From Auanema rhodensis (lineage: Eukaryota; Animalia; Nematoda), in NCBI GenBank assembly GCA_964057225.1, contig OZ059895.1, positions 14,880,001 to 14,944,000 of the forward strand: 64,000 nucleotides of DNA, given 5' to 3'. Positions 16,435-36,555 of the stretch are shown here, piece by piece. Both the position numbers and the translations under genes were made by a program. The notes beneath the pieces were generated by a model. It did not search any database. It was not told where the DNA came from and saw only the letters and a list, made by a program, of their open reading frames with translations. Every line of letters starts with the position of its first letter. The first letter of the stretch is position 1.

Positions 16435-19400
16435 TCAAGATTGTAATGTATGGCATATTAAGTCGACATCGTTTCCGTTTTTCTTGAATACTGGTTGCTG
16501 ACTGGGTTGATCAGCTGGGAAGACTCTGATTGCTTTTGCCTTTCCTCCTAATGAGCATTGAATTATGGAAGCCACTTGAATAGGTGGGCGACGCATGTTC
16601 AACCTAAATATAATAGTTAGTTTTAATAATTGCAAAATGTTTATTACTTATCAAGATGGGCAAGAAGGGTACCGATTACTTCACCAATACGATCCTCTTC
16701 CTTGGGATTCTTAGTGCAACCAAGAATGTCATTCTCTCCGAGATGGAATACGATTAATCCATTGGGTTCCGGTGTTACGGAAATTTTCAGTATCTGAAAT
16801 TAATATCAATTTGAGGTAAATAGGACTTTTACTGGTTTTACGTTTTGCAATGGAACTGGCTCTTTGAGTAACTTGAACTTCTTCGTGTCTAATTTGGCTA
16901 TATAGCGGTCAGTTATGATGAGAAGACGTAAGGAGGATTTATTGAATTTATTGAACTTTTGAATGTAGGTGCTGAATAGCAATTTTCCATATGGGTGTGT
17001 TTGACATAAAACGCTGCACCCTTCTCTGTATTGAAGATTTGAACTTCCTATCTCGTGCTCTTCTTGCTAAAGTAGAGTTTTTTTAAATATTATTTTAAGA
17101 CAATACAATACCTGAAGAAGATAGTCTCCTTTCCAAAAACGGGAGTATCCCCAAAGATCTCTTTTTCCATTAAGTGATTCAAAAGCTGCAATCTTCTGTG
17201 GTAATGACTCTCTTAAATGTTGGGGAATGCGATTGAGAATAGTTGCTGCTCTCCAACGTCTGTGCACAACCTGTAAAATGTATGTTCTTTTTTTAGTTTA
17301 ACAGGCTTTTCACCTTCAATTTATTAACAAATGGAGCAAGTACCACTGGTGGGGCAGGCCATCGGACGCTTTTTCCTAAATCTCGCATGTTCTTAACACC
17401 CCTGCAAAATGAAATTTTTAACTGGCTTGTTATTAGCTCTTACTTGAAAGCATTGATAACACTAAAGATGTATGTTCTTAATTTGTATTTGCGATAAGTA
17501 GCCATAATAAGGTAAACCGCCCTGATTTGCTTATACTTTCTTCGTGCTTGATAGCCTCTAACCATCTGAAAGAAAAGCGTTGAGTTCACAATTAAGTGTC
17601 GACTCTAATCTTGCCTTCTGTAAGAAAGTAACAACTTCTGGTAACTTTTGGCTTCTCAGTTCTTCCAGCCGGAAAACTGTTTGAGGGCTTCTAATGAAGA
17701 CCTAAAAGAATGGAACTAAGATACTTCATGAAAAAAGTTGATCGACCTTAGTTCTTCCATTTACACAATCTTGAGCTTCACCAACGTGCTGTAGAATTTT
17801 GGTGCAATTATCTCGTGGTGAACCACCTCGGGGATTTGGCCAGGTAGCTGGACATAGCATCTTGTACCTAATATATTGTTGTAATATTTAGTTTTTGAGA
17901 ATATTTACCTGTTGATGAAACGATCATATGGCATTCTGTGAGCAAAGCCTGCTCTGCGAACTCTGACATTTTCTAAGAGACCCAAATATCGGGCTTGATG
18001 CTCTACACGTTCAATATCAAATACTGAACGACTCTTCTCTTCATTAGGCTTGATGCATCTGATATAGTATGGCTCTTTACTAGCTAATTGGGCTACCAAA
18101 TCAGCCATAGAATTCTGAATTATTCTCATCGTAATTTAATAATTTTTCTTCAAACTAACCTTAAATATATATCCTGCAGTTGGAGGTCTTCTGTTTACTT
18201 CACGCACGGATTTTGATCCATCAGGGAACAGAGCACGAAGGAGAAGGTCTTTGCTTAAAATAAATAGTTAACAAAAGCCAATGAATACTGAAATAACCTG
18301 TTGAATAGTAGACGCTTAAGGTCTTGGTACAACGTATCTCTATTCTTGTCCATGAAACTTTCTACTGTATATGTTACGTCACCAGCATAATGAGTAATTC
18401 TGAAGTATCGTGATGCAAATAAATTATATTATCTTTATTTACCGGAAATCTTCGAAACCAATAGTCTTATCCGATTGTTTTACACCTCTACTGCTGTAAT
18501 GCCCGTGACTACCCATCTTCTTATCTAATTCACCCAAGAAAACCTGGAAAAAAAATTATTACGGTGAATAGATTTCGTGTGAATTATGTCTTCTAAGATA
18601 AGAATTTCTCATTAAAAGAATCATTGGTGCTCTAAGCTCTTTTTTTTGCTTTGAACGCTCGTATTATTGGCAAGATATTACCTTATCAGTAATGCGTCCA
18701 ATTGAAGCGCAGGCGTCATCAAGAGTGGCAAGAATTCCATTACGGGGATGCTCGACCAAATCGCAAATAATCTGAGATATATGAGTTATTCCAAAAAAGT
18801 AAAATAGTTAAATAACCTTATTGTTGAAGTAATCTATCTTTTTCCATTGAATTCCTTCTCTTTCGTATTCTTCCTGTTCTTGCTTTAACACCAACTCAAT
18901 GAATAGTTGTTGAAGTTTTTCGTTGCAATAGTTGATACATAGCTGTTCAAAGCTTAACAAGAAATTATGAAAGATAATTCAGTAATCATTGTGTTACCTA
19001 TTTTTACCAAAAATTTCAAAACCGTAGATATCAAGCACGCCGATAACGGTTGTCTTACTATATCTGGAAGTATTTTCTACACTGATGGCATCATTCACTT
19101 GCTGGACAATCCAAGAGAAGAGTCTTTCATAAACAGCCTAAAAACACAAATTTTAAATATATGTTATCGTTTCTGTGTCAACCTTAGCCAAGGCATCTCT
19201 TGTGTATAGTGCGGCATTAACGTCGTGTGCTTTTGTAACAACATCACCTCTAGCAGCAACAACCTAAAAGAAATAAATGATTTTTTCTTTCCTAATCACA
19301 ATTCACCTGGGAACAGAGAGCGTTTTGGAGCTGAGATATGCTAACTCCCAGACATTTGGCCGCTACTGATAGGACCTCCCGATTAGCAACTAAACTACCA

Positions 19401-22400
19401 CCAGATGTTCCTTCATCCGGAACAAATGTGATATTTCCCAAATGCAATATAGCAGCAATCGTGGACCATAACTGTAATAACCGAATTGATCATCATATTT
19501 CCATAATTTCTTTATCGTACGCTATCAGTCATGGCTTGCTTGATATTGCTAATGGTTTTAAGAGCCTGCTGTACTTCCTTAAAATCTTTGGCATCATCGA
19601 TACTTGTAACCTGAAAAGTGTAATGCAAACTGAGGAATCAACACTATTTGTTCAAACCCTATCAGAGTTTCCTTGATTTAAGTAATAGTATCTTCTGGGA
19701 TCATTTTTCAGCCCTAGTTCGTTCAAGCGAGAACTATCAAGTCCCCTGAGAAGTTGATAGAAAACATGGAAATTTCGTTCTCCCGTTTGCTGCCGAACAA
19801 CACGAGACTAAATTGCAACATACAGAGAAGTTGTCAAATTGGAAGTTCACACCTTTTCGAGGAGATAGTTGGATATATTTCCACCGACAGGGTCGCCATT
19901 AAAATTGAAGTTGATTTGCATATATTTTCCAAAACGACTTGAATTATCATTTCTTGTAGTTTTCGCACATCCCAATGATTCCAAAATACAGTTAGATCTC
20001 AGTAAAATGTTTTTGACTCTACAAAAAAAGTACAATTATTCCAGTTAATGTTTTCCCGTTTATAAGGTACTAAACATGTGAAAATTTACAGTTTTGCAAC
20101 AATTTTTCTATTTTCACTATAGATTTTGCGCTATATTCTCCGCTATTCTTATTCGTTAAACAGGGTTTTAACATTGAAAAGTAAATGAGAACAAATAAAA
20201 CAGCGTTGTACTCTGTGTTCAAAAAAAAAAAGACCCGAATTGCACATTATCCGGTTGAAGGTTAACTATGAGACATTATATGTATGTATGTAAACCCTCT
20301 GTACTGTATCCCCTTTTTCAATGTTGACTTGTAAATCAACAACGAACTCAATCAAGAAAGCTAACTGCTGTCTACTCTGGAATAGAAACATGGTTAGATA
20401 AACCATTAAGCACATTATATATTCGTCTACTCATCACATAGTTACAAACAGCGTTGATGGAAATGTAATGAGATCATGCGATCTTAGAATTAACTAATTT
20501 CAACAATTAAATAATGTTCATTCTCGCTAATGATGTTCACCCAAGAACATCATGTTTCTCTTCATTCTGAAAATCATGGTTTGCCATTTCTTGAATAGTA
20601 ATGATGATTTGACACAGACAATTAGTCTGAGGAACGGATTGATTGAAACAGTATTATTGGAAACATAAATTCAATATTTCTATTTTCGAAGTCGCGCACA
20701 AAAAAATTTTTTTTTCGCATTAGCATCAATCGATTCATAGCTGAATCAATTATGCTAAGTTAAGCTTCTAAAAATCCTCCAAAACAGCCAACGATTCCGG
20801 AATTTGGTGGCCTTGCCAAGTTCGAAACCTTAGTTAAATCATGAAACCAGAGTCAAGTCAATCGTTTCTCATTCCCCTCAACCTCTGGACTCATCTATCT
20901 ATGCGAACATATTAGAACTATATAACGATGTGGTAGTTAATCGGATTAGTCTATTCTATGTTACCTCATTTCCACCCATTCAAAGATCTTCTAATACAAA
21001 AATTTGAAGAAATGTTTTTCGATGTTTCAAAAATCTCTACAAAAAATCCGAAATTATGGCTATTTTCGGAATATTGAGAAATGCTCCCTTAGAAGTAATG
21101 TGCCATGAAGCTGAATCTTTTGGGTGACTACCACATGAATAGAGATATAGATATGACACTTATAAGGGACAGATGGCTAACGCATGAACAAAGTGCCTAA
21201 AGATAATCATCTTGTCTTGTCCAGCCTGAAGGGTATCCGCGTGGAGACCCTCCAGCTGACAGATAGCACGGTTCATCTATAGCTACTAGCTTACACTAAT
21301 CTTTGAACATTAGGACAGTAATTAAAAAAGCAAGCGCACACATGTTCAGTTATAGGTCAGAAACAACATGTCAAATATGAATGATGTACAAGCAACTGAC
21401 CGTTCAATTTCGCGCTGTTGTTGTACATTAGTAATAGCAGCTAAGTATCTCATTATTATTTTGGATGTTTCCGTTTTTCCTGCTCCAGATTCGCCTATGA
21501 TTAATATCTTTGTTAGCATTGTCTTCGCATCACATATCTTACCAGAAATGACAATACATGAATCACGTCCATACCGCTTCATCGATCTATAAGCAGCATC
21601 AGCAATAGCAAAAGCATGAGGTGGACGTTCATATAGCTCTCGTCCCTATAATATAGTATATTATTCATATTATTAGTAAAAAAGTAAACAAGCCTTGTAT
21701 TTATCAATCGTTCCCTTTTCATATATTTCAAGATTTCGATACGGATTGACGGCAATCAGTACCTCTCCAATGTATGTATAAATTCGACTTTTCGAAAATC
21801 TGAAATGTTTAGGAAATCAAATATGATGATAATAGTATACAACCGTGCTCTGTTTTGAAGATTTGCAAAATAAAATTCAAAGTTCACGTAACGCGCGCAA
21901 CAATGGCCTAGGCTAATTGCTCTCTTCAGCTCATTATTCGATTTTTTTAAAAATGCACAAAGATATATGCATATGCTGTGTCATCATATACATAAATCTT
22001 TTCAGTTTTCATATTCTTTCCTACTACTGACATGTGGATTTGCTTGTTCAGACAAGCATCTGCAGTACAAGAGTCATAACTAGGTACCTACTAATGCGAT
22101 AACTAGCTTAAGAACAGATGAAAAATGAAATCGACCATGTCTCTGACTGACAAATAACCGTATTTGCTCTTTGTCTGAAGATTTTAACAAAACAAGTCAG
22201 TGTCTATCTAAGGTATAAAGAAAATGAAGAGGAAATGACAATCAACCGACAGCTGGCAACTTTTTTGTTTTTTTTTCCTTTTGGGCATTTTTTAAATGAA
22301 AACATCTGCTTTTTGCATTATTATTGCGTATAAAGAATTTGTTGAGTAAATTTTGAATCATATATATTCTTAGGTATAATTGAAATTTGAAATACGATTC

Positions 22401-26463: not shown

Positions 26464-29400
26464 ATGAACTCCGGATGTTGTTGTTGTGTCGATCATTTAC
26501 AAAGTAATTTTTTAATTTTTCCTTTTTTTTTATCCTTCAAATGGTCGTAATTAAACTTTTAGTATTTAATGATATTTATTATAAACATGTGCTAAGTATC
26601 CTCGATGACTATAATCTCATACTAATATATTCCAGATGATGGTTGCCTTTCGGTTTTAAATTAAACCATCTAACATTTGTCGATACTCGGTGACGATATA
26701 GCTAAAAGCAGCATCAAACCGAGAATGCGGTACTTAAAAGGTAATTTTTAATTTTCAACTTTGTCCAATTTTACGATTACCGGGATTGTCTGATTAGGGC
26801 TGTTTTATGTGTCTGATGGCTATGATAGTTCATAATTCTTAGCTATAGCACAGCGGATTTCCTTTTCTTTGTCATTTTGTATCTATCGAATCCAGTCTGT
26901 ATATCAATTAGGTATATTATCTCTGTCCATCCAAATTAGGTGATGCTTACTTGATGCGTGCCAAGCCTTCTTAGCCAATCTAGTTAAGTTTCACATTCAT
27001 TTAAATCAGAACTCTACTTTCCTGGCACAGCACAACCACAGCCGCAAAAACAATTTTCGAAATTGAATGTTATATCCAGATGCTATTACGAATAGTATTT
27101 AGCGATATTGCTGGGCAGATCTTCACTATTTGTTTGTCCGGCCTATGTCATCCCGTAAAATGTCATGTATGTTTGAATATCAGATGATCTTAGAGGATCT
27201 TTCTGATTCATCTTCTTTTACATAGGCATTCCCACTTTTTTTTAATATATTTTTCATGCACATTCTATTCTTTCATGCTATAGTGCTGTATATTCATTGT
27301 CTTTCCCACATATCTCCACATATCCTGCAAACATTCGATAGCCAGGTGGTCTGATACGGTTTTCTAAAGAGATTACTCAAGTAACTTGTGACCCGTATCA
27401 CAGTGTGCAGTCCACCTGATAGTTGTGTTTAGACAAGCCACTTGGCGCCATCTTCGATTAAATATTGCTTTCTCCGGTCCATGTTTTCACTCTATTGTCG
27501 GTCTTTCTTGTCAGTTTAAATTTTTATATTTTTCGTAATCTAAAGCTGTGTAACATGTAGAAACATTCTGCTTCAAATGTGCTTAAGAAAATATTATTGC
27601 GAACGCTAGAATGTTTGTGCCAATGAGTCACATTCCTTCTTTGTCTTTCTCAATCCCATACCACTCCTCTCTCTTCCTGTCTTGCTTTCATTGGTCATTC
27701 AACATTCCATATCCTTTGTATCAAATGTCTTATCAATTCCTTTCCCTAAACTGACCGCGTACATACCATATCATGCAAGTTTTTTTCAAGCGGAAGTTGT
27801 TGACAAACGCTCCATGTACCTTATTAAGTTTGTTGTTCTCATCATAGGCCGCAAATCAAATCCGTTGTTGTGCCTTGCGCTTTATTCTCTTTTTTGGTCG
27901 ACCTTGCATCTAAAGGATGGATGCCAGAATAATACCTCGTTAATTTGCCATCACGTATCGCTATGTCCACGTGACCCTCACGAGCCATTCATTGATTTTT
28001 TTCTTTACTCCTTATATGGCATATACCTTGTTTGCTACCCCTAAGTACATTTGATAGCATGCTGCTACACCTATCAAGCTCAATATGTTCGTTTCGATTG
28101 CAAGTATGTCCAGTTCTAATCACGCATTGTGAGTCTTAGTTTTATGTATTTCTGATTATTCTCGTTTCTTGGTTTGACCTCCACTACTTGCCGTGTTCTA
28201 CCTTAGTGGTTTAGGACGCCACCTCAGAAAAACCGTACTTGACCATATTTGCCCGACCGCTGATTTTTCTACAGTTTTTTGCTAAGTTTTAACAAATTAG
28301 AACATGGGATATACGGGTGAGATAGCTGGCTTAGTACTTTCGTACGCTAGCTATTTTTCTCAATGTCAGCTAGTGCGCAATAAGTTGTTGTCAATTTTCT
28401 GTGGATACACTTGTTTTAAAATTAAGCATTTCGCTTAATCTAATTAGTTTGATCGTCTTTAATTCACTTCGCATTTCTCAAAGTTTCTTCATTTACCATC
28501 ATTTCATAAATCAATTCTTCTGGTTTCATAATTATTTGTCTGTATGTATAGAATAAATATTCTGATGTCTTACCTTACCACGAGGGAGCGATTATCATTT
28601 ATGGTGTCATTGATGTTATTATTATTCTTTAACTGCGGTTCTCTATTATATTCTCTATTAATTGACAGTTTTGTTTAGATTTTGACCTTATTACTATATA
28701 TTTAGAACCTTTATTACCTCGTTTTCTCATCTACTTTCATGCCTATATCATCTCTTTTATTTTAATTTATTATCTGAATGCATGAATTGCGTGTTATGTC
28801 GGTAATTCATTTCGTGACTTTGTTCGATCTACACGTTTCTAAGCCACTTAATTCAACTATACTTGTTTAACTGAATTTCTAGTGAAGATTTTTCTTGCGT
28901 ATTTTCATTAAAAAAATATTTTAGCGTCAATGCTAAAACGGAGAGTGACGGTCCATTTTGGAGCTGTCAGGGTAGTTGTTCCATGTCCGGAGGACACATT
29001 AACAGTTCGGGATTTGGCCTCTGCTGCTATACTAAGATACAAAAAAGCAACAGGACGAGTAAGTTCAGCTTTTGATATTTCGTTTCAATGTCGCCCGTGA
29101 CTGTGTGGTTATGGTTGGTTTAATATTCACTTGGTCATTCATTCCCATGTCCATTCTTTGTCCTTTGTTGATAAAATCTCGTGTACATGTGGAGGTACAC
29201 AGAAAGCAAGCGAACAGTCAAAAAGGACTATAGCTGTTATAACCTCGAATGTCGCTTGATTATTGCAGTTTTGATCATAAATATTCAACGTGTATTATAT
29301 TTGCATGTTTCAAAATAGAAATTCTCTCTCTCTTTCAGTTTTCATGCCACAGTTTTGCTTTAGTTGCATACCGCGGTTATGAATTTTTGCGGTCTCACTT

Positions 29401-32400
29401 TCGTCCGCCTTCGTTCTTTTGAAATGTGATAAATTATATAAAATATTTCTTCTCTTTCTTTTGACTAATTCAGTTTCCCGTTAGCGAAGTCGTATTGCAG
29501 TTCCTACTTCAATATGAGCTCAATTTTCTTGTTTTGTTTATTATTTTATATCCTTATTAATTTATTTTTTATTATTGTTCAAACCGAAAATACTAAAATG
29601 GTGGGCCACCTTTAAGCTACGTTTAGACAGCATGTTAGGTTGAGAGAAGGCTAGACTCCAGGTAAACGAAGGTTAACATTGCATCGGGCTATGTGCCGTT
29701 TGTGTGGCCTAGACACACAGACATCATGAAGTCGAACGAAGTATACAGCAACCTAACCATCTACTTCTAGTGTTCCTCACTTCCTTCTCCTCCTCACCTG
29801 CGCATGTACATACAGGGAATTGGATGTACGTGAGGCGGACAGCTAGTCTGAATCAATCAATTTTTTCGTGCTTTATGTTAGTCATAGGCAGCTCTTTAGG
29901 TCTGTTCGTCTTTGCTACTGCTGTCCCTCAAACAACCTGTTGTTTGTGCGAGCCGATTGTCAGATAACTGGTACGAAGTAACTACCGTTTGATGATTTTA
30001 ATTTTCTCATTCTCCGTCTGATCGTCGTACTTTTTCAAAACGGAACCATATATTGCAAGCAGGAGAGCAGCTTTCATATTGCTGAGAGTTTTTGCTAGAA
30101 ACTCGCAGACTTTCTTTGATATCAATACTTGTTTTTCAAGTGTTTGTACTTGCATTCTCTAGTTGTCACACACACAGTTCGCTCTCGTTTGCGGCAATCG
30201 ATTTTCATACGGTTTCTGACGTGATATCCTCTTGCTTTTCTAAAAAAATCTGATAAGATATTTTTCTAATTTTCGCTAAACCTTCTCTTTAGCGGATTAG
30301 TCTATTCTTTCTAGTTGACGCTAAACCGTTCTGATGGCCTTTCGATCCTTAGCGAAATCATTTTATGTTTTTTCTCTGTGAAGGGCATTTTTTTTGCTGC
30401 GAATAGCACCTGGGCGATCAATATGCCTTTTACGTGGTTTGAAAAACAGCTTATGGACTTCTCATTTTTTTCTGAATGCAATCTCCGTCTCACCTACTTT
30501 GATGTTGATCTCGTATTTTCCTTATTTGAAAGAGTTATAGTTTTAGTAATGTTTGGAAAATAGTTCCCATGAATATTTGTCATGACCATGCATTATCAAT
30601 CAACTACAAGTCCGGGCGACTATGTAACGGTGAGTAAACGTTCTTATTGTTTTATATGTAGACGGATTCTGATGTGCGTGTTATGCACATGGAATGCCTT
30701 CGAGATGGAGGTATATTAGACATGGATGATCGTCTAGTAGAGGTTTTTGATGAGGCAACAGATCAGGTATGATAAGCTTCAAGTTGTTGTATGTGTAAAC
30801 AATTTTAAACATTTGTTTAAGCTGGTTATAAACTATATAAATATTGTTTTGTTATTTATAACTTAGATACTAACATGATTTTTGATTTTCTTTCTAGATT
30901 CTTGCGATTTATGACGAACAATCCCCTAATGGTAGCGATGAACCGGGGACAAATTACCAAGTTCTATCATCTCCATATCCTAATTATTCATCTCCAGCTG
31001 GATCCTCGACTCATTCCAACAACTTCCCTTCCAGTAGAATGACTAGCTCTTCCTCCATAACCACATGTAATGTGAATTATCCGTTAACAAATTCTTCTTC
31101 AATGGATATGGGTATGATGCGAAGAACATTGCCAAATGGCCGATCACCTTATGTGCATCCAATGCACGAAAGTATGATCGAAATGCCTAATATTGAGTCA
31201 ATACCAAGTATGTTTTTCTTACATATACTGCTTTTCATATTGTTTTTTAAAGCTAAAGCACTGCGAGTTTCACCACCGTGCGACGCGCGTCCTGGAGTAT
31301 CGTCTTCCTCATCCGGTAGTGAAGTCACTTCACCACCTATTCGCTCCTCTCTCCGCTCAGAAACTGCCACTCCTAGCAAGCATCGTGTTACGATGAGTCC
31401 AGGTGTGATATTTGCCTAATGGAGCAATGAAATTTTTAAAATTGTTCAGAAGTGGAGAAACGAATAGCGGAAAATTCAGAGAGAGATGGTCGGTTAACAC
31501 GTTCATCAGCTCGCAAATCTAGGATTAGTGATACATTTTTTGAGGCTAAGGTATTTCATTAATTATTTCGTTTTCTATTTACTAAAACTATAGGATCGTT
31601 TGGATGAGATGCAACAATCAACGAGTTCTATTAGATCTTTCAATTCTACGCGTCGTTTGCCTTTAATAAGTTGCGTTGATGATCCTGAAAAGACGATCAT
31701 TACTCTTCCTGATGATGATAAGAACAGCTTAGGTATTGAGGTATGTCATTGATGATCTCTGTGTATTTATTATATTATGTTAATTTGAAGGTTATCGGAA
31801 TCTTTGAAGATCCCAGTACGAATACTGGACGACTTTCTGCCGTGCAAATCATTCGAATTGATTCTAACGGCCGAGTCGGTCGAGACGGTCGCCTTGTAGC
31901 AGGTGATAACATAGTTTCAATTGACGGAAGACCCGTTTATCAGGTGGGAGTACTTGAATGAATATATATTTATCTCCGTTTTTCTTAGATGTCCGTTTTT
32001 CGAGCGCGAGCTTATTTGAACGATCTCAGTATAAAGCCGGCACCAACCTTGACTATTGCTCGAGCAAAAGAGCATTTTCACTCAGATGACGATGAAAAAG
32101 ATAAGAAGCGAAATGAGTTGTTGTCCTCTCAGAAAAAGCCGATTTTGTCCGCTTTGCAACAGGCTAACACGTCACAGGCTCTCGGACAGAATAGTAGTGT
32201 ACAGCTAACGAAAAGTGATTTTTTTGACCGAGTATTTGATGTTAATACGACGCTTTTCAGGCAATAACGGTTTCGGCTTCACTGTTACCGGTAGAGAAAC
32301 GACCAAAGGGGAACGATTATTTTATATAGGAACCGTGAAACCAAATGGAGTTGCATTAGGTCATTTGAGAGCTGGGGACCGTTTATTACAGGTTTTTTCT

Positions 32401-35400
32401 TTTTGATGTTTCAACAGCTAATATATAAATTTCTAGATAAACGGAGATCTTACATCTGATATGACCCAATCGGAAGTTGTAGAAAGGCTGAAGAAATCCG
32501 CTATTGGCGAAACGGTTGAATTCATAGTGTCTCGAGTAGCTGACGAAAACAAGGAGAACAACGGTATTCAATCCGCAAATTCGAGTGCAGTACATCATCA
32601 TTCACCCGAACCTCTATCTCCTGTTCATTTGAAGGTATTGTTTTCTTTTAAAAGTATTGAAACAAAGACAATTGTTATTCAGGGAACATGTGATATCGAT
32701 GAATTGAAGTTTGAAGTTCCTTTAAATAGCACTGGAAGCGCTGGATTAGGTGTTAGTCTAAAGGCCAGAGTTACAGTGAAAAGCGATAAAAGTCGACATG
32801 ATTGTGGTATTTTTATTAAAAGTGTAAGTTTTCTATTTTAGAATAGTTCTCTCTCCTTTCCGATGAAAAAACGCGACATCATGCAAAACGTGAACTTCCA
32901 CGTCACGCGTCAATTTTGCAAATATTTTGATTTTCAAAGTAGTTCTAATTTTATCTGCTTTGATCGTTCTAAGATATTATTAGCCGCAAGATACACAAGT
33001 TATTGATATTTTTTTCAGGTTTTGCATAATGGTGCTGCTTTCAAAGATGGTCGATTACGGGTAGATGATCGCATCATAGGAATAGAAGAACTTAATTTAA
33101 TCGGCATGACTAACAGTTCAGCTGGTGATGCTGTAACTCGCAGATTGAAAGCAATTGACCCTTCATGCAAAAGTGTGACGTATGTATATATTTTCTTTAT
33201 ATTTATTATTTATCTCGCTATTTCAGTCTTATTGTTCATAGGAAGGTAACATCTGATAGCGAAGAAATACTCACGATTCCATCGTTACGTGAAAGTTCTT
33301 CTGAAGGAGATAAACGTTCTTCTACAGCTAGTGAACAGCCAAGGTTTTCATTAAGGTTTATTGATAGAAGTTTACCTCTTGTTTAGCATTTGTAGACTTG
33401 ATGAATCAGAACTGGCTAGTTGTGATCCATTTGATCGTGAAGCTCCAACTAGGAAGAGTATGAGTGAAAAAAGAGGAATGGGTGCTTCTCTAGATCCCAA
33501 TCATTTGAAGTTATTCCAAGAAATCAAGCACCAACGACAGTCTAGTGGTAAGTATAATTAGCGTTTATCAATGGCTTTAACCTTCGCTGCTTTACCCCAT
33601 TGTTACTATTCAGCTCCTCCACCTTCCCTTACCTCCTCCTCATCCTTTCATGGTCATGCTCAGCAGCGTTCCGCTTCTCAGCGAGCTGCTGCTAGAGCAC
33701 GCAGTCAATCTGTTCATCCTCGTGAAGTTAACCCCTCTAAGTCTGCTTCTAGACCACATGTTTCCATTAAAGGTTAGTGTACATGTCATGCGCTTTTCCC
33801 TTTTCTTTTTTTTTCCAAATTTATCTTTTAACTTATTTTTCATATTAACTTTAGAGCCTTCTAAGCGACGATCACTTAGTGTTGAAAGTCTCAACGTTGC
33901 ACCTAATGGTGATGCTCGAATTGGCCAATTGACACAATTAAATCGCAGTCGTCAGGCTGACATTGATGATTTTTATGGTATATTTCGTACAGAAGTTCTA
34001 TTTTTGAATTGTCTCATTTTTAGCTTCATCTCCTCACCCATTTCCACCAGGTTCTCCTGTCGTTGTGGTACCAAGACAATCGGCAATTAACAAAGAACGT
34101 CAAAGAAGAAAAAGTGTTGGAAGGTAAAAATTTACACAAATTACATTTTTTCTCATGAATCGTTCTTTATTTTCCTTTTCATTTCTTTTTCTTCTTAGTA
34201 CTATGAAGAGTTGGTTCGGGTTTGGAAGTAAATCACGCGATTCTTCTCCCGAAAAAGGCTTTGACCGTGAACGTGAAAGGAGAGAGAAAGAAGATATGCG
34301 CAGGTTTGTAAATTATTTCTCAGTCTATATCTATGGATTCTGTTTCTAGAGTTCAAGAACATTATGATCGTGCTCGCCGAGAGGATGAGATGAGCAGATC
34401 TCATGGCACTCCTAATGCTACAAGACGAGATCAGCAAATGTACCAAATGTATTCAGGCGATCATCCTTATCAGGTATGCTATTCGAACTTATTTATCAGC
34501 ATGAACACTTGAAGTAATTTTTTAAAAATACTTTATTTTCATGGCATTATGTACTTCTTGGGTTTTAATTATTATTTGCGTGTAACATATTTATGATGAT
34601 CGTAATTCCATTATTATTTTAATGAGTGTGTGATGCTTTGTTTTTCTGTTAAATTTTTTTATCTGATCAAAATATTTTCTCTTGGCATGTCTTGATTCGT
34701 TTACAGTCGCCGCCTCCGAGTAAGCCTCTGATTTTAACTAATTCTCGGTTCTACACCTCCGGTCAGACGGCTAGGTATAGCTATTTTGGTTTAAATTAAA
34801 TCCTACCTATGTGCATGATTCCTATCCTTTCCCTAGTTTTATCCTCTGATTTACGGATTGTTTGCATGTGCGATCGGGCCTAGTTACCGTTCGATCGAGA
34901 TGTTTTGCTTCTCTTTCCTGCATGTCTTCTATCGCATTTGTCCTTTTTTGCTTTTAATTTTCCCTTATTCAGAACACCATCTCAAGCTACCACGACTACG
35001 AACTGGTCGACAGATTCCAAGCTCATCGATACCCTGATGGGCCTTCCGTTATCCGACCAACCTCCCATCATCCCGCCACGCCTCCCCCAGCCTACCATTA
35101 CGCCCTACCCAGGTAAGCTACTGAAATCAACGCGTAAAGAACAGTTATTGAATCCAGTTCCAAGTCGTACCACGGGTCGACCTCCGGCGCCAGCCCAATC
35201 CATCCCGGTTACGGTAGTGAACGAACACCGGTCAACCGACGAGCTGCCGCCCCGGACTATTACCACATGTTCAACTCGTGGTTCGCATACAGCGGAGGAG
35301 GTGGAGTTGGCGCGGCCCCCTCCATTAAGGTTTAACACAAAATAAAATTGAGTGTTGTTTATTCCATAACTACAGGCAGCGTATGGAAATTCCAATCGCC

Positions 35401-35938
35401 CAGCCATTAATAGGCCGGAAGCCTCCGCTTCCAGATCCTGGTCAAGATCAGTACCGTCGAATTCTGCCATATATGCTCCCCCAACAGAACCTTCTCAACT
35501 CTACTCTCGCTTTTCCAACTACTAGGTAGGTGTTTCAAACATTATGGTAAATTCGTTAATGATTTCAGGTTTGCTCTTGCCGGAACGTCTAGCGGTTCTC
35601 CATCCCCATCTTACGAACGACTATCACTACGAGCGCGAAAAAAAATGCGCAGAGCTGTTCAGTCAGAAAGTTTTGACATTCCTAGTCCCTCCGTTACAAC
35701 ACCTACAAGCAGGTATCCCTCTCATAACCAAAGTCCGGCTTCAATCCCAAAGCGACATGTCATTCAACCAGCTCAAGATTATCAAAAAAACGCTTACTCT
35801 CCTGATACTAGCCAAGGCTATCTATACGCCTATAATACATGGCGTACACAAGCTGGTACTAGTCTTCCATCTCGAGGGCCTCGTGTTATGCGAGGTAAGG
35901 TGACTCCAAATATATTCGAATCTGCTACAGATTGTTAA
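26464..35938 (+). CDS. par-3: PAR-3/Bazooka polarity scaffold (CR1, 3 PDZ, aPKC-binding CR3); core CDS 28930-35525, with alternative N- and C-termini extending to 26464 and 35938
   Basis: CR1 RRVTVHFGAVRVVVPC...DGGILDMDD; PDZ motifs GRVGRDGRLVAGDNI, GFGFTVTGRE, GSAGLGVSLK, GAAFKDGRLRVDDRI; CR3 FDREAPTRKSMSEKRGMG; RRSLSVESL; nematode-type tail DYYHMFNSWFAYSGGGGVGAAP. Confidence 0.96.
34707..34774 (+). other. par-3: par-3 68-nt frame-switching cassette exon (SPPPSKPLILTNSRFYTSGQTA-R)
   Basis: TTTACAG acceptor and AG|GTATAG donor; open in phase 0 from the upstream exon; length not a multiple of 3; lies in an unusually long intron (34474-34972). Confidence 0.75.
34812..34924 (+). promoter_or_regulatory. 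Cluster of three RBFOX-family (FOX-1/ASD-1) splicing elements TGCATG downstream of the par-3 cassette exon
   Basis: TGCATG at 34812-34817, 34863-34868 and 34919-34924 within a 198-nt intron, plus GCATG at 34685-34689 upstream of the exon. Confidence 0.7.
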
Positions 35939-36555
35939 ATAACTTATTCACCTTGTGCCATTTATATATTATCATTTTTTCCGTGTACATTTTGAGTTAT
36001 ATCATGTAAATCTGTGAGAAATGATGTTATTAGCATCATTACAATACATATTATAAATAGCAAATGACCGTTTTGGTATTCTCTACGCCATTTACCGTTT
36101 TATACCCAGTCTTCGTGACATTCTTCTCATAAAATTTCTCGAACATCGACAAATAGACTCAAGTTGTTGAGAAAGCATGGCTTTCATCCAACTTGTCTCA
36201 TATATATATATATATATATTCTATATATCTAAGTTTTCAAGTTTTCATTCTCCACCTGTGAATTATGTAAGCCTTATATATTCACTTTGAAATATTTTAT
36301 TAAGAGATCACTTTGAAATTATTTTGTTTTTGTGTTCTTTTCCTCCTCCCATTCAGACTGTTGATAATATTGATGATTTATATCATATTGTGCCGCGCAT
36401 GTACTAGGGAACGTGAAGAAGTAAAATCTAATTATATTATTCATTTGATTTTTCGAAAATTAAATACATTTCTTCAATATTTATTAAAGTTTATGTTTGA
36501 ATATCTGCTCTCTGATCTGGGCTATACACTTTGATCATAGCATTCCATGCTGCTG

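Follow-up and report, generated by a model that had tools for sequence, protein, structure and literature searches.

A frame-shifting cassette exon and two overlapping tails at the 3' end of par-3 in Auanema rhodensis, a probable counterpart of a known Caenorhabditis elegans event

The par-3 locus and its terminal exons

PAR-3 is a core polarity scaffold. We analysed a window of 64,000 nucleotides (nt) from the nematode Auanema rhodensis (contig OZ059895.1; all nucleotide coordinates are those of this window, + strand, unless stated otherwise), in which a gene has, near its end, three exons that are open in two reading frames, the choice between which would depend on a short cassette exon. The first-pass annotation of this DNA had taken the gene for par-3, and the matches agree with it: there is a Par3 N-terminal domain (Pfam PF12053, Par3_HAL_N_term) at 28918-29067 with 44.3 bits for a cut-off of 21, there are partial Pfam matches to PDZ domains at 31743-31958 and 33022-33180, and 12 collinear tblastn segments with 56% identity link the window to PAR-3 of Auanema sp. 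JU1783 (hereafter JU1783). By these matches the gene is therefore assigned to par-3 / Bazooka, as the orthologue of a rhabditid nematode. When the last exon alone was used as query in an exhaustive HMMER search, a single clear relative came out, the 1236-residue PAR-3 of JU1783 (P0001), which is the closest protein to the A. rhodensis gene. We put at about 0.8 the probability that this 3' end has the same non-triplet cassette and the same dual-coding layout as par-3 of Caenorhabditis elegans.

The proposed exons were spliced and translated by script, and the region read was 34300-36300. In the list below, as in the rest of the text, a slash between bases or between peptides marks an exon border, "skipped" and "included" refer to the cassette, and e1 to e4 are the exons that follow it.

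34350..34473, + strand: constitutive upstream exon, ending in phase 0 (...GDHPYQ) with the donor CAG/GTATGC; aligns to residues 909-942 of JU1783 PAR-3
34707..34774, + strand: cassette exon, 68 nt (2 mod 3), frame-shifting; encodes SPPPSKPLILTNSRFYTSGQTA
34725-34754, + strand: conserved cassette core PLILTNSRFY, with synonymous variation in the motif
34973..35112, + strand: dual-coded exon e1, 140 nt; 75% nt identity with JU1783
35158..35329, + strand: dual-coded exon e2, 172 nt; 85.5% nt identity and equal length in JU1783
35376..35525, + strand: dual-coded exon e3, 150 nt; in the skipped frame RFSNY, then TAG at 35523-35525
35526..35568, + strand: last intron, 43 nt, GTAGGT...TTTCAG; its end reads GATTTCAG/G
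35569..35938, + strand: last exon e4, coding only in the included isoform; 122 codons and TAA at 35936-35938, ending FESATDC
35618-35644, + strand: e4 motif RLSLRARKK
35927-35935, + strand: e4 C-terminal TDC

The cassette is bordered by GTTTACAG/TCG, with an acceptor ending TTTACAG, and by GGCTAG/GTATAG, and e1, e2 and e3 all have AG/GT borders. In the skipped path 34473 is joined to 34973, and the three exons read NTISSYHDYE...DYYHMFNSWFAYSGGGGVGAAPSIK...RFSNY up to the TAG. The included frame (+1) runs through the 462 nt of these exons without a stop, six stops interrupt the third frame, and in e2 the bases that give DYYHMFNSWFAYSGGGG in the skipped frame give TTCSTRGSHTAEE in the included one. 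The AG of the stop doubles as the exon end (TAC TAG/GT); in the included isoform it forms, with the first G at 35569, an arginine codon split by the last intron. The reading then goes on into e4, which also carries a WRTQAGTSLPSRG block, and the included tail reaches 299 amino acids (aa), 15% of them proline. The splicing script thus reproduced what the first-pass annotation had described: the 68-nt cassette with its splice sites and coordinates, the 462 nt with their two open frames, the stop whose AG is an exon end, and the in-frame last exon. Dual coding has been defined elsewhere by a cassette length that is not divisible by three and by at least 60 nt coding in both frames (PMC13247117); here the cassette has 68 nt, the shared region 462 nt, and both frames match homologous PAR-3 tails. 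The definition further asks that the two isoforms be expressed and escape nonsense-mediated decay, as has been shown for the C. elegans orthologue.

Two other products were tried and rejected. A 13-nt micro-exon, made through an internal GA/GTAAGC donor (34719/34720; site 34716-34725), would run into stops in e1, and JU1783 does not have the site. The skipped frame joined to e4 by skipping of e3 keeps its phase, e3 being 150 nt long, and stops in e4.

The counterpart in C. elegans

The first-pass annotation knew of no description of such a switch for par-3. This does not hold, as C. elegans isoforms with both tails are annotated and an orthologous cassette of 173 nt has been listed in the literature. 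In the C. elegans PAR-3 protein cluster the annotated isoforms have two types of tail: isoforms a, b, c and others end ...PPHRFPQY (e.g., Q17353), and four isoforms of 1533, 1530, 1454 and 1451 residues diverge after ...IPQYPHNT (e.g., U4PRH0). These four continue with the cassette peptide SKIMATS...LGNSKFYSSYREPSITQRP and the +1 reading of the shared exons, and then with ...VFPSTR/FPIAASS...AERISLRARKKLHREAV...TPKN. The cassette lies at L002:11146-11318 of the C. elegans locus (III:5674017-5674189), the shared exons (L002 11850-12025 and 12377-13031, 831 nt) have both frames open, and the canonical stop reads CAG TAC TAG/GTCAGT.

The paper in question (PMC13247117; Nat Commun 2026;17:5112, 'Pervasive non-triplet alternative splicing drives functional isoform diversity') lists par-3 III:5674017-5674189 as a non-triplet cassette, calls the event from whole-animal RNA sequencing (RNA-seq) under a 10-90% inclusion criterion, and classes it as resistant to nonsense-mediated decay (NMD; change in percent spliced in -3.9%, p = 0.83) and as 'dual coding'. 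The event was validated by reverse transcription PCR (RT-PCR), with primers given and a par-3 gel in the source data of Fig. 7A; these primers have no occurrence in the 64-kb window. According to the same source data, wobble-position phyloP for par-3 is 1.34 in the dual region vs 0.25 in the single-coding control. The main text mentions par-3 only in the primer list and reports no isoform-specific function. The table of its Fig. S6B, which is without gene names, gives a maximum dual-coded length of 829 nt, a value that would fit par-3, with its 831 nt of shared exon.

The A. rhodensis and C. elegans events have the same intron position, a homologous cassette peptide, the overlap of stop and donor, and the motif of the downstream exon. 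By these criteria of orthology the A. rhodensis event is to be regarded as the orthologue of the C. elegans one, and not as new.

Two observations on C. elegans entries may be added here. An old PIR entry for PAR-3 (P0135, 1360 residues) runs, at about 1260-1360, from the canonical frame straight into the alternative last-exon tail (...HRFPQ/FPIAASS...ERISLRARKKL...), with no stop at ...RFPQY, and seems to be an early conceptual translation made across the junction of stop and splice site. C. elegans PAR-3 also has two N-termini (MSASS... and MHNGRGG...).

Conservation in other nematodes

The JU1783 protein P0001 is exactly the included isoform: ...NEPYQ / LPSPDKPLIVSNSRFFTNWA / RTPQTIMTT... 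/ ...AFPTTR / YAYTP...ERLSLRARKKLRR...FESVTDC. In its locus (L001) the cassette measures 62 nt and is followed by exons of 134, 172 and 150 nt, each open in either frame, and by a last exon of 370 nt, which is the length of e4 and is open in both species; the stop overlaps the donor (AAC TAC TAG/GT) as in the window. The locus of Angiostrongylus cantonensis (L004) has three dual-coded exons with both frames open and GAG TAC TAG/GT at the stop, and TAC TAG/GT is common to the window, JU1783, C. elegans and A. cantonensis. The second frame, which the first-pass annotation expected to be unbroken in close relatives, has no stops in JU1783 or A. cantonensis. Cassettes are of different lengths (68 nt in the window, 62 in JU1783, 80 in A. 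cantonensis, 164 in C. briggsae and 173 in C. elegans), but all five are 2 mod 3 and all end GGC(C)TAG/GTA.

Because the tail is fast-evolving and of low complexity, its homology rests on local BLAST within the set of orthologues; a word-indexed protein search with the JU1783 tail alone returned only the query itself. Searching both tails of the window against 121 PAR-3 relatives, as had been suggested, we found homologous tails for each. The skipped frame matches Caenorhabditis, Mesorhabditis, Diploscapter and several strongylids, the included frame matches JU1783, Ancylostoma, Necator, Nippostrongylus, Haemonchus and Angiostrongylus, and the last exon matches the C-termini of JU1783 and strongylids. 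The likeness of the skipped-frame tail to the canonical C. elegans tail, which the first-pass annotation stated, is borne out by E = 3e-19, by a common DYxHMFNSWFAY motif and by the RFxxY end. These data support the view of a genuine and conserved alternative coding path that runs through the cassette, the +1 frame and the last exon.

In three automated gene models, P0024 (C. briggsae), P0004 (N. brasiliensis) and P0016 (A. cantonensis), the tail begins in the skipped frame and then jumps either to the last exon or to the included frame. Such models are probably artefacts of annotation in the dual-coded region, and some could be real extra isoforms.

Selection on the overlapping frames

Substitutions were compared between the window and JU1783, with the upstream single-coded exons (aligned blocks) as control; the values are aa identity and the differences at codon positions 1/2/3.

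Dual region, skipped frame: 86% identity; 14/5/42%
Dual region, included frame: 59% identity; codon-position differences not informative
Last exon e4: 45% identity; 40/38/51%
Upstream single-coded exons (aligned blocks): 69% identity; 23/18/52%

The skipped frame is strongly constrained and has a classic coding signature. The dual exons are 74-86% identical at the nt level, neighbouring single-coded exons about 60%, and the skipped frame closes with the same RFSNY and the same stop in both species. Along the 462 nt the included frame resembles a linker constrained mainly to stay open, and its most conserved string, CST(R/H)GS(H/R)T, is the +1 reading of the skipped-frame motif YHMFNSWFAY.

The openness of each frame was assessed by re-coding the protein of the other with the gene's own codon usage in 20,000 trials. 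When the skipped protein was re-coded, the +1 frame was stop-free in 3.5% of the trials for the window (with a mean of 2.7 stops), 2.6% for JU1783 and 1.1% for C. elegans; when the included protein was re-coded, the skipped frame was open in 0 of 20,000. A sign of stop avoidance in the second frame, which the first-pass annotation had proposed to look for, is seen in three species, with only 1-3.5% of synonymous re-codings open, and it is unlikely that the +1 frame is open by chance.

Constraint on the included peptide itself is seen in the cassette and in the last exon. From the window to C. elegans the cassette core PL(I/Q)(L/V)xNS(R/K)F(Y/F) is preserved, and its codons differ synonymously. 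The e4 motif R(L/I/V)S(L/M)xA(R/K)KK is unchanged across ten aligned tails, again with synonymous variation. Within the protein set this basic motif is confined to 24 PAR-3 entries, all from rhabditine (clade V) nematodes; it could be a membrane-binding or basophilic-kinase site. A WNxWNxxTGxSLPSR block and the extreme C-terminal TDC are found in the window, in JU1783 and in the strongylid entries that reach e4 (for TDC, nine entries from seven species). Because such motifs are invariant while their codons change synonymously, e4 does not evolve as a plain untranslated region (UTR), which the first-pass annotation had considered as the opposite outcome, even though most of it is weakly constrained. 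The same annotation had pointed to class I PDZ ligands. The C-termini T-D-C (included) and S-N-Y (skipped) are a loose fit to the S/T-X-hydrophobic pattern, since they end in Cys and Tyr where V, L or I would be canonical; TDC is kept in the window, JU1783 and strongylids, not in Caenorhabditis, and SNY becomes PQY in C. elegans.

Elements in the introns around the cassette

34498..34503, + strand: AGCATG in the upstream intron, about 25 nt past the donor; same element and distance in JU1783
34692..34706, + strand: 3' splice-site block TTGATTCGTTTACAG, the conserved 15 nt before the cassette
34812..34817, + strand: TGCATG no. 1, 38 nt past the cassette; positionally conserved in JU1783 (+39)
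34863..34868, + strand: TGCATG no. 2, +89 nt; no JU1783 counterpart
34919..34924, + strand: TGCATG no. 3, +145 nt; opposite TGCACG in JU1783

The three TGCATG noted in the first pass just downstream of the cassette are real and locally enriched. There are 18 on the + strand of the 64 kb, and three of them lie in the 198-nt intron after the cassette, where 0.056 are expected (Poisson probability of at least three, 2.8e-5); when sites are placed at random, such a cluster arises somewhere in the 64 kb in 2% of cases. A. cantonensis has one TGCATG adjoining the next acceptor and one GCATG 107 nt past the cassette. The strongest intronic conservation relative to JU1783 is found in the 15-nt acceptor block and in the AGCATG of the upstream intron, rather than in the TGCATG sites, and a sub-optimal TTACAG acceptor is common to the window, JU1783, C. 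elegans and C. briggsae. Downstream (U)GCAUG is known to raise exon inclusion by Fox-1-family proteins, with a stronger effect when there are more copies (review PMC2777236). Our literature search found no paper linking par-3 with fox-1 or asd-1.

The upstream intron also contains a GU-rich run (GTGTGTG), at 34624-34635 in the window and at about 10653-10667 of L001 in JU1783; it may be the site of a GU-binding splicing factor.

Neighbouring features

On the minus strand, 17905-21592 contains open reading frames with myosin motor-like sequence (e.g., ...GESGAGKTE...), which suggests an opposite-strand myosin gene upstream of par-3. At 36200-36222, about 260 nt beyond the par-3 stop codon, there is a short (TA)n microsatellite.

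How two tails could be made, and what else might explain the data

The anatomy of this 3' end, its conservation in other rhabditine nematodes and the signatures of selection are what we observe; that both mRNAs are made in A. rhodensis we infer. When the cassette is skipped, e1-e3 would be read in the ancestral, constrained frame and the protein would end RFSNY at the TAG that is also the exon end, with e4 presumably serving as the 3' UTR. When it is included, the PLIxxNSRFY peptide would be added and the frame shifted by +1, and the same 462 nt would give a Pro/Ser/Thr-rich linker, merely kept stop-free. The former stop would then become part of an AG/G arginine codon split across the last intron, and translation would enter e4, giving RLSLRARKK, WN..TG.SLPSR and the C-terminal TDC.

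Several results weigh against the dual-coding reading, and some of them favour the idea that only the skipped isoform matters, the cassette mRNA arising from splicing noise, the openness of the +1 frame being due to chance and 35569-35938 being a plain 3' UTR. Reduced synonymous variation, which had been named beforehand as a sign of a second constraint, was not detected: skipped-frame synonymous differences affect 38% of identical codons vs 45% in the control exons, which is not significant (Fisher p = 0.21). Over these 462 nt no amino-acid constraint is clearly seen on the included frame, substitutions are distributed as the skipped frame alone would predict, and most of the included tail may be a passive linker. 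The composition of the skipped protein itself yields few +1 stops, as the re-codings show, and e4, with its low aa identity and its differences spread over the three codon positions, is overall weakly constrained and about as diverged as the larger introns (60% vs 55-57% nt identity). Yet a cassette of 2 mod 3 has been kept in five species over a range of 62-173 nt, the cassette and e4 motifs persist with synonymous changes across rhabditine (clade V) nematodes, e4 is open at an equal 370 nt in the two Auanema with TDC kept into strongylids, the +1 frame is independently open over 831 nt in Caenorhabditis (P about 0.011), and in C. elegans the isoform resists NMD and is common enough, by the 10-90% inclusion criterion, to have been called from whole-animal RNA-seq (PMC13247117), all of which makes noise an improbable account. 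The converse idea, that the cassette is constitutive in A. rhodensis, with the included tail as sole product and the skipped frame as a relic, could draw on the only gene model of the nearest relative, P0001, which is the included form. It is very improbable indeed, given that the skipped frame has an identity of 86%, with differences strongly biased to third positions (identity is 59% for the included frame and 69% for the rest of the protein in aligned blocks), is open in none of the 20,000 re-codings of the included protein, and has its stop and RFSNY identical in the window and JU1783.

Downstream UGCAUG elements might let Fox-1-family proteins promote inclusion of the cassette in particular tissues, a possibility that we rate somewhat below even odds: three copies lie in this one intron right after the alternative exon (P = 2.8e-5), the first keeps its distance from the exon (+38/+39) and the third stands opposite GCACG in JU1783, and multiple downstream copies are typical of Fox-1-enhanced exons (PMC2777236). 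Against it, there is no TGCATG in either cassette-flanking intron of C. elegans or C. briggsae, although the event is alternative in C. elegans; a single TGCATG remains in the cassette-flanking introns of JU1783, so that only one of the three is conserved; GCATG elements of the upstream intron could act in the opposite direction; at least three TGCATG in 198 nt turn up somewhere in the 64 kb in 2% of random placements; and the acceptor block, not TGCATG, is the most conserved intronic stretch. The switch may thus be real and not run by the Fox-1 family, its inclusion being set by weak splice sites (the TTACAG acceptor, the TAG/GTAT donor) together with other factors, such as binders of the acceptor block, of the GU-rich upstream element or of pyrimidine-rich downstream tracts, with the TGCATG cluster as a lineage-specific accident or a minor input; to this we give nearly even odds. 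For this lineage Fox-1 control is plausible as a hypothesis; it does not look like an ancestral feature of the switch.

The fullest version of the dual-coding reading would have Fox-1-family proteins drive inclusion in neurons or muscle in an Auanema-like lineage, swapping the YHMFNSWFAY...RFxxY tail for a linker with RLSLRARKK and TDC, and thereby giving the polarity scaffold a distinct localisation or set of partners, the overprinted tail being a functional module conserved across rhabditine (clade V) nematodes. Taken as a whole this is speculative, and we consider it unlikely.

As a discovery, the finding repeats an event already annotated and published as dual coding in C. elegans. Beyond the existing record it adds the depth of conservation, the overlap of stop and donor, the motifs of the cassette and of e4, and a possible lineage-specific Fox-1 input. 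The frame-shifted tail is not peculiar to C. elegans, as its architecture and short motifs are kept across Auanema, strongylid parasites and Caenorhabditis, and on the strength of this conservation we argue that the second tail has a function. Work on PAR-3 has centred on the canonical tail and, to our knowledge, no PAR-3 study has yet addressed the overprinted one.

Comparison with known systems

Exons enhanced by Fox-1/RBFOX, such as fibronectin EIIIB and NMHC-B N30 (PMC2777236) or C. elegans daf-2c (PMC4876481), resemble the one described here in having several UGCAUG just downstream of a short alternative exon. They differ in that here the motif is not conserved at the Caenorhabditis orthologues of par-3 and the A. 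rhodensis sites are known from sequence only. A closer likeness is found in C. elegans tnt-3 (PMC13247117), where a small non-triplet exon also selects between two frames of shared downstream exons without NMD; in that gene, however, 83 aa are recoded and muscle phenotypes have been demonstrated for both isoforms, and no function specific to either par-3 isoform is known.

The closest known system is par-3 of C. elegans itself, gene F54E7.3. The differences lie in the size of the cassette (173 nt vs 68 nt in A. rhodensis), in the dual-coded region (831 nt in two exons vs 462 nt in three), in the end of the included tail (...ERISLRARKKL...TPKN vs TDC in A. rhodensis, JU1783 and strongylids), in the TGCATG after the cassette, absent from C. 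elegans and present in A. rhodensis, and in the evidence, expression having been demonstrated for C. elegans and the A. rhodensis event being read from the genome. The likenesses extend over the whole layout: the same gene and the same position, between the exon ending ...PYQ or ...PHNT and the tail exons; a cassette of 2 mod 3 with a GGC(C)TAG/GTA end and a PLxxxNS(R/K)FY core; downstream exons open in two frames, of which the skipped one ends in Y and a stop, with TAC TAG/GT at the exon end; and an included frame that continues into a further exon with R(L/I)SLRARKK.

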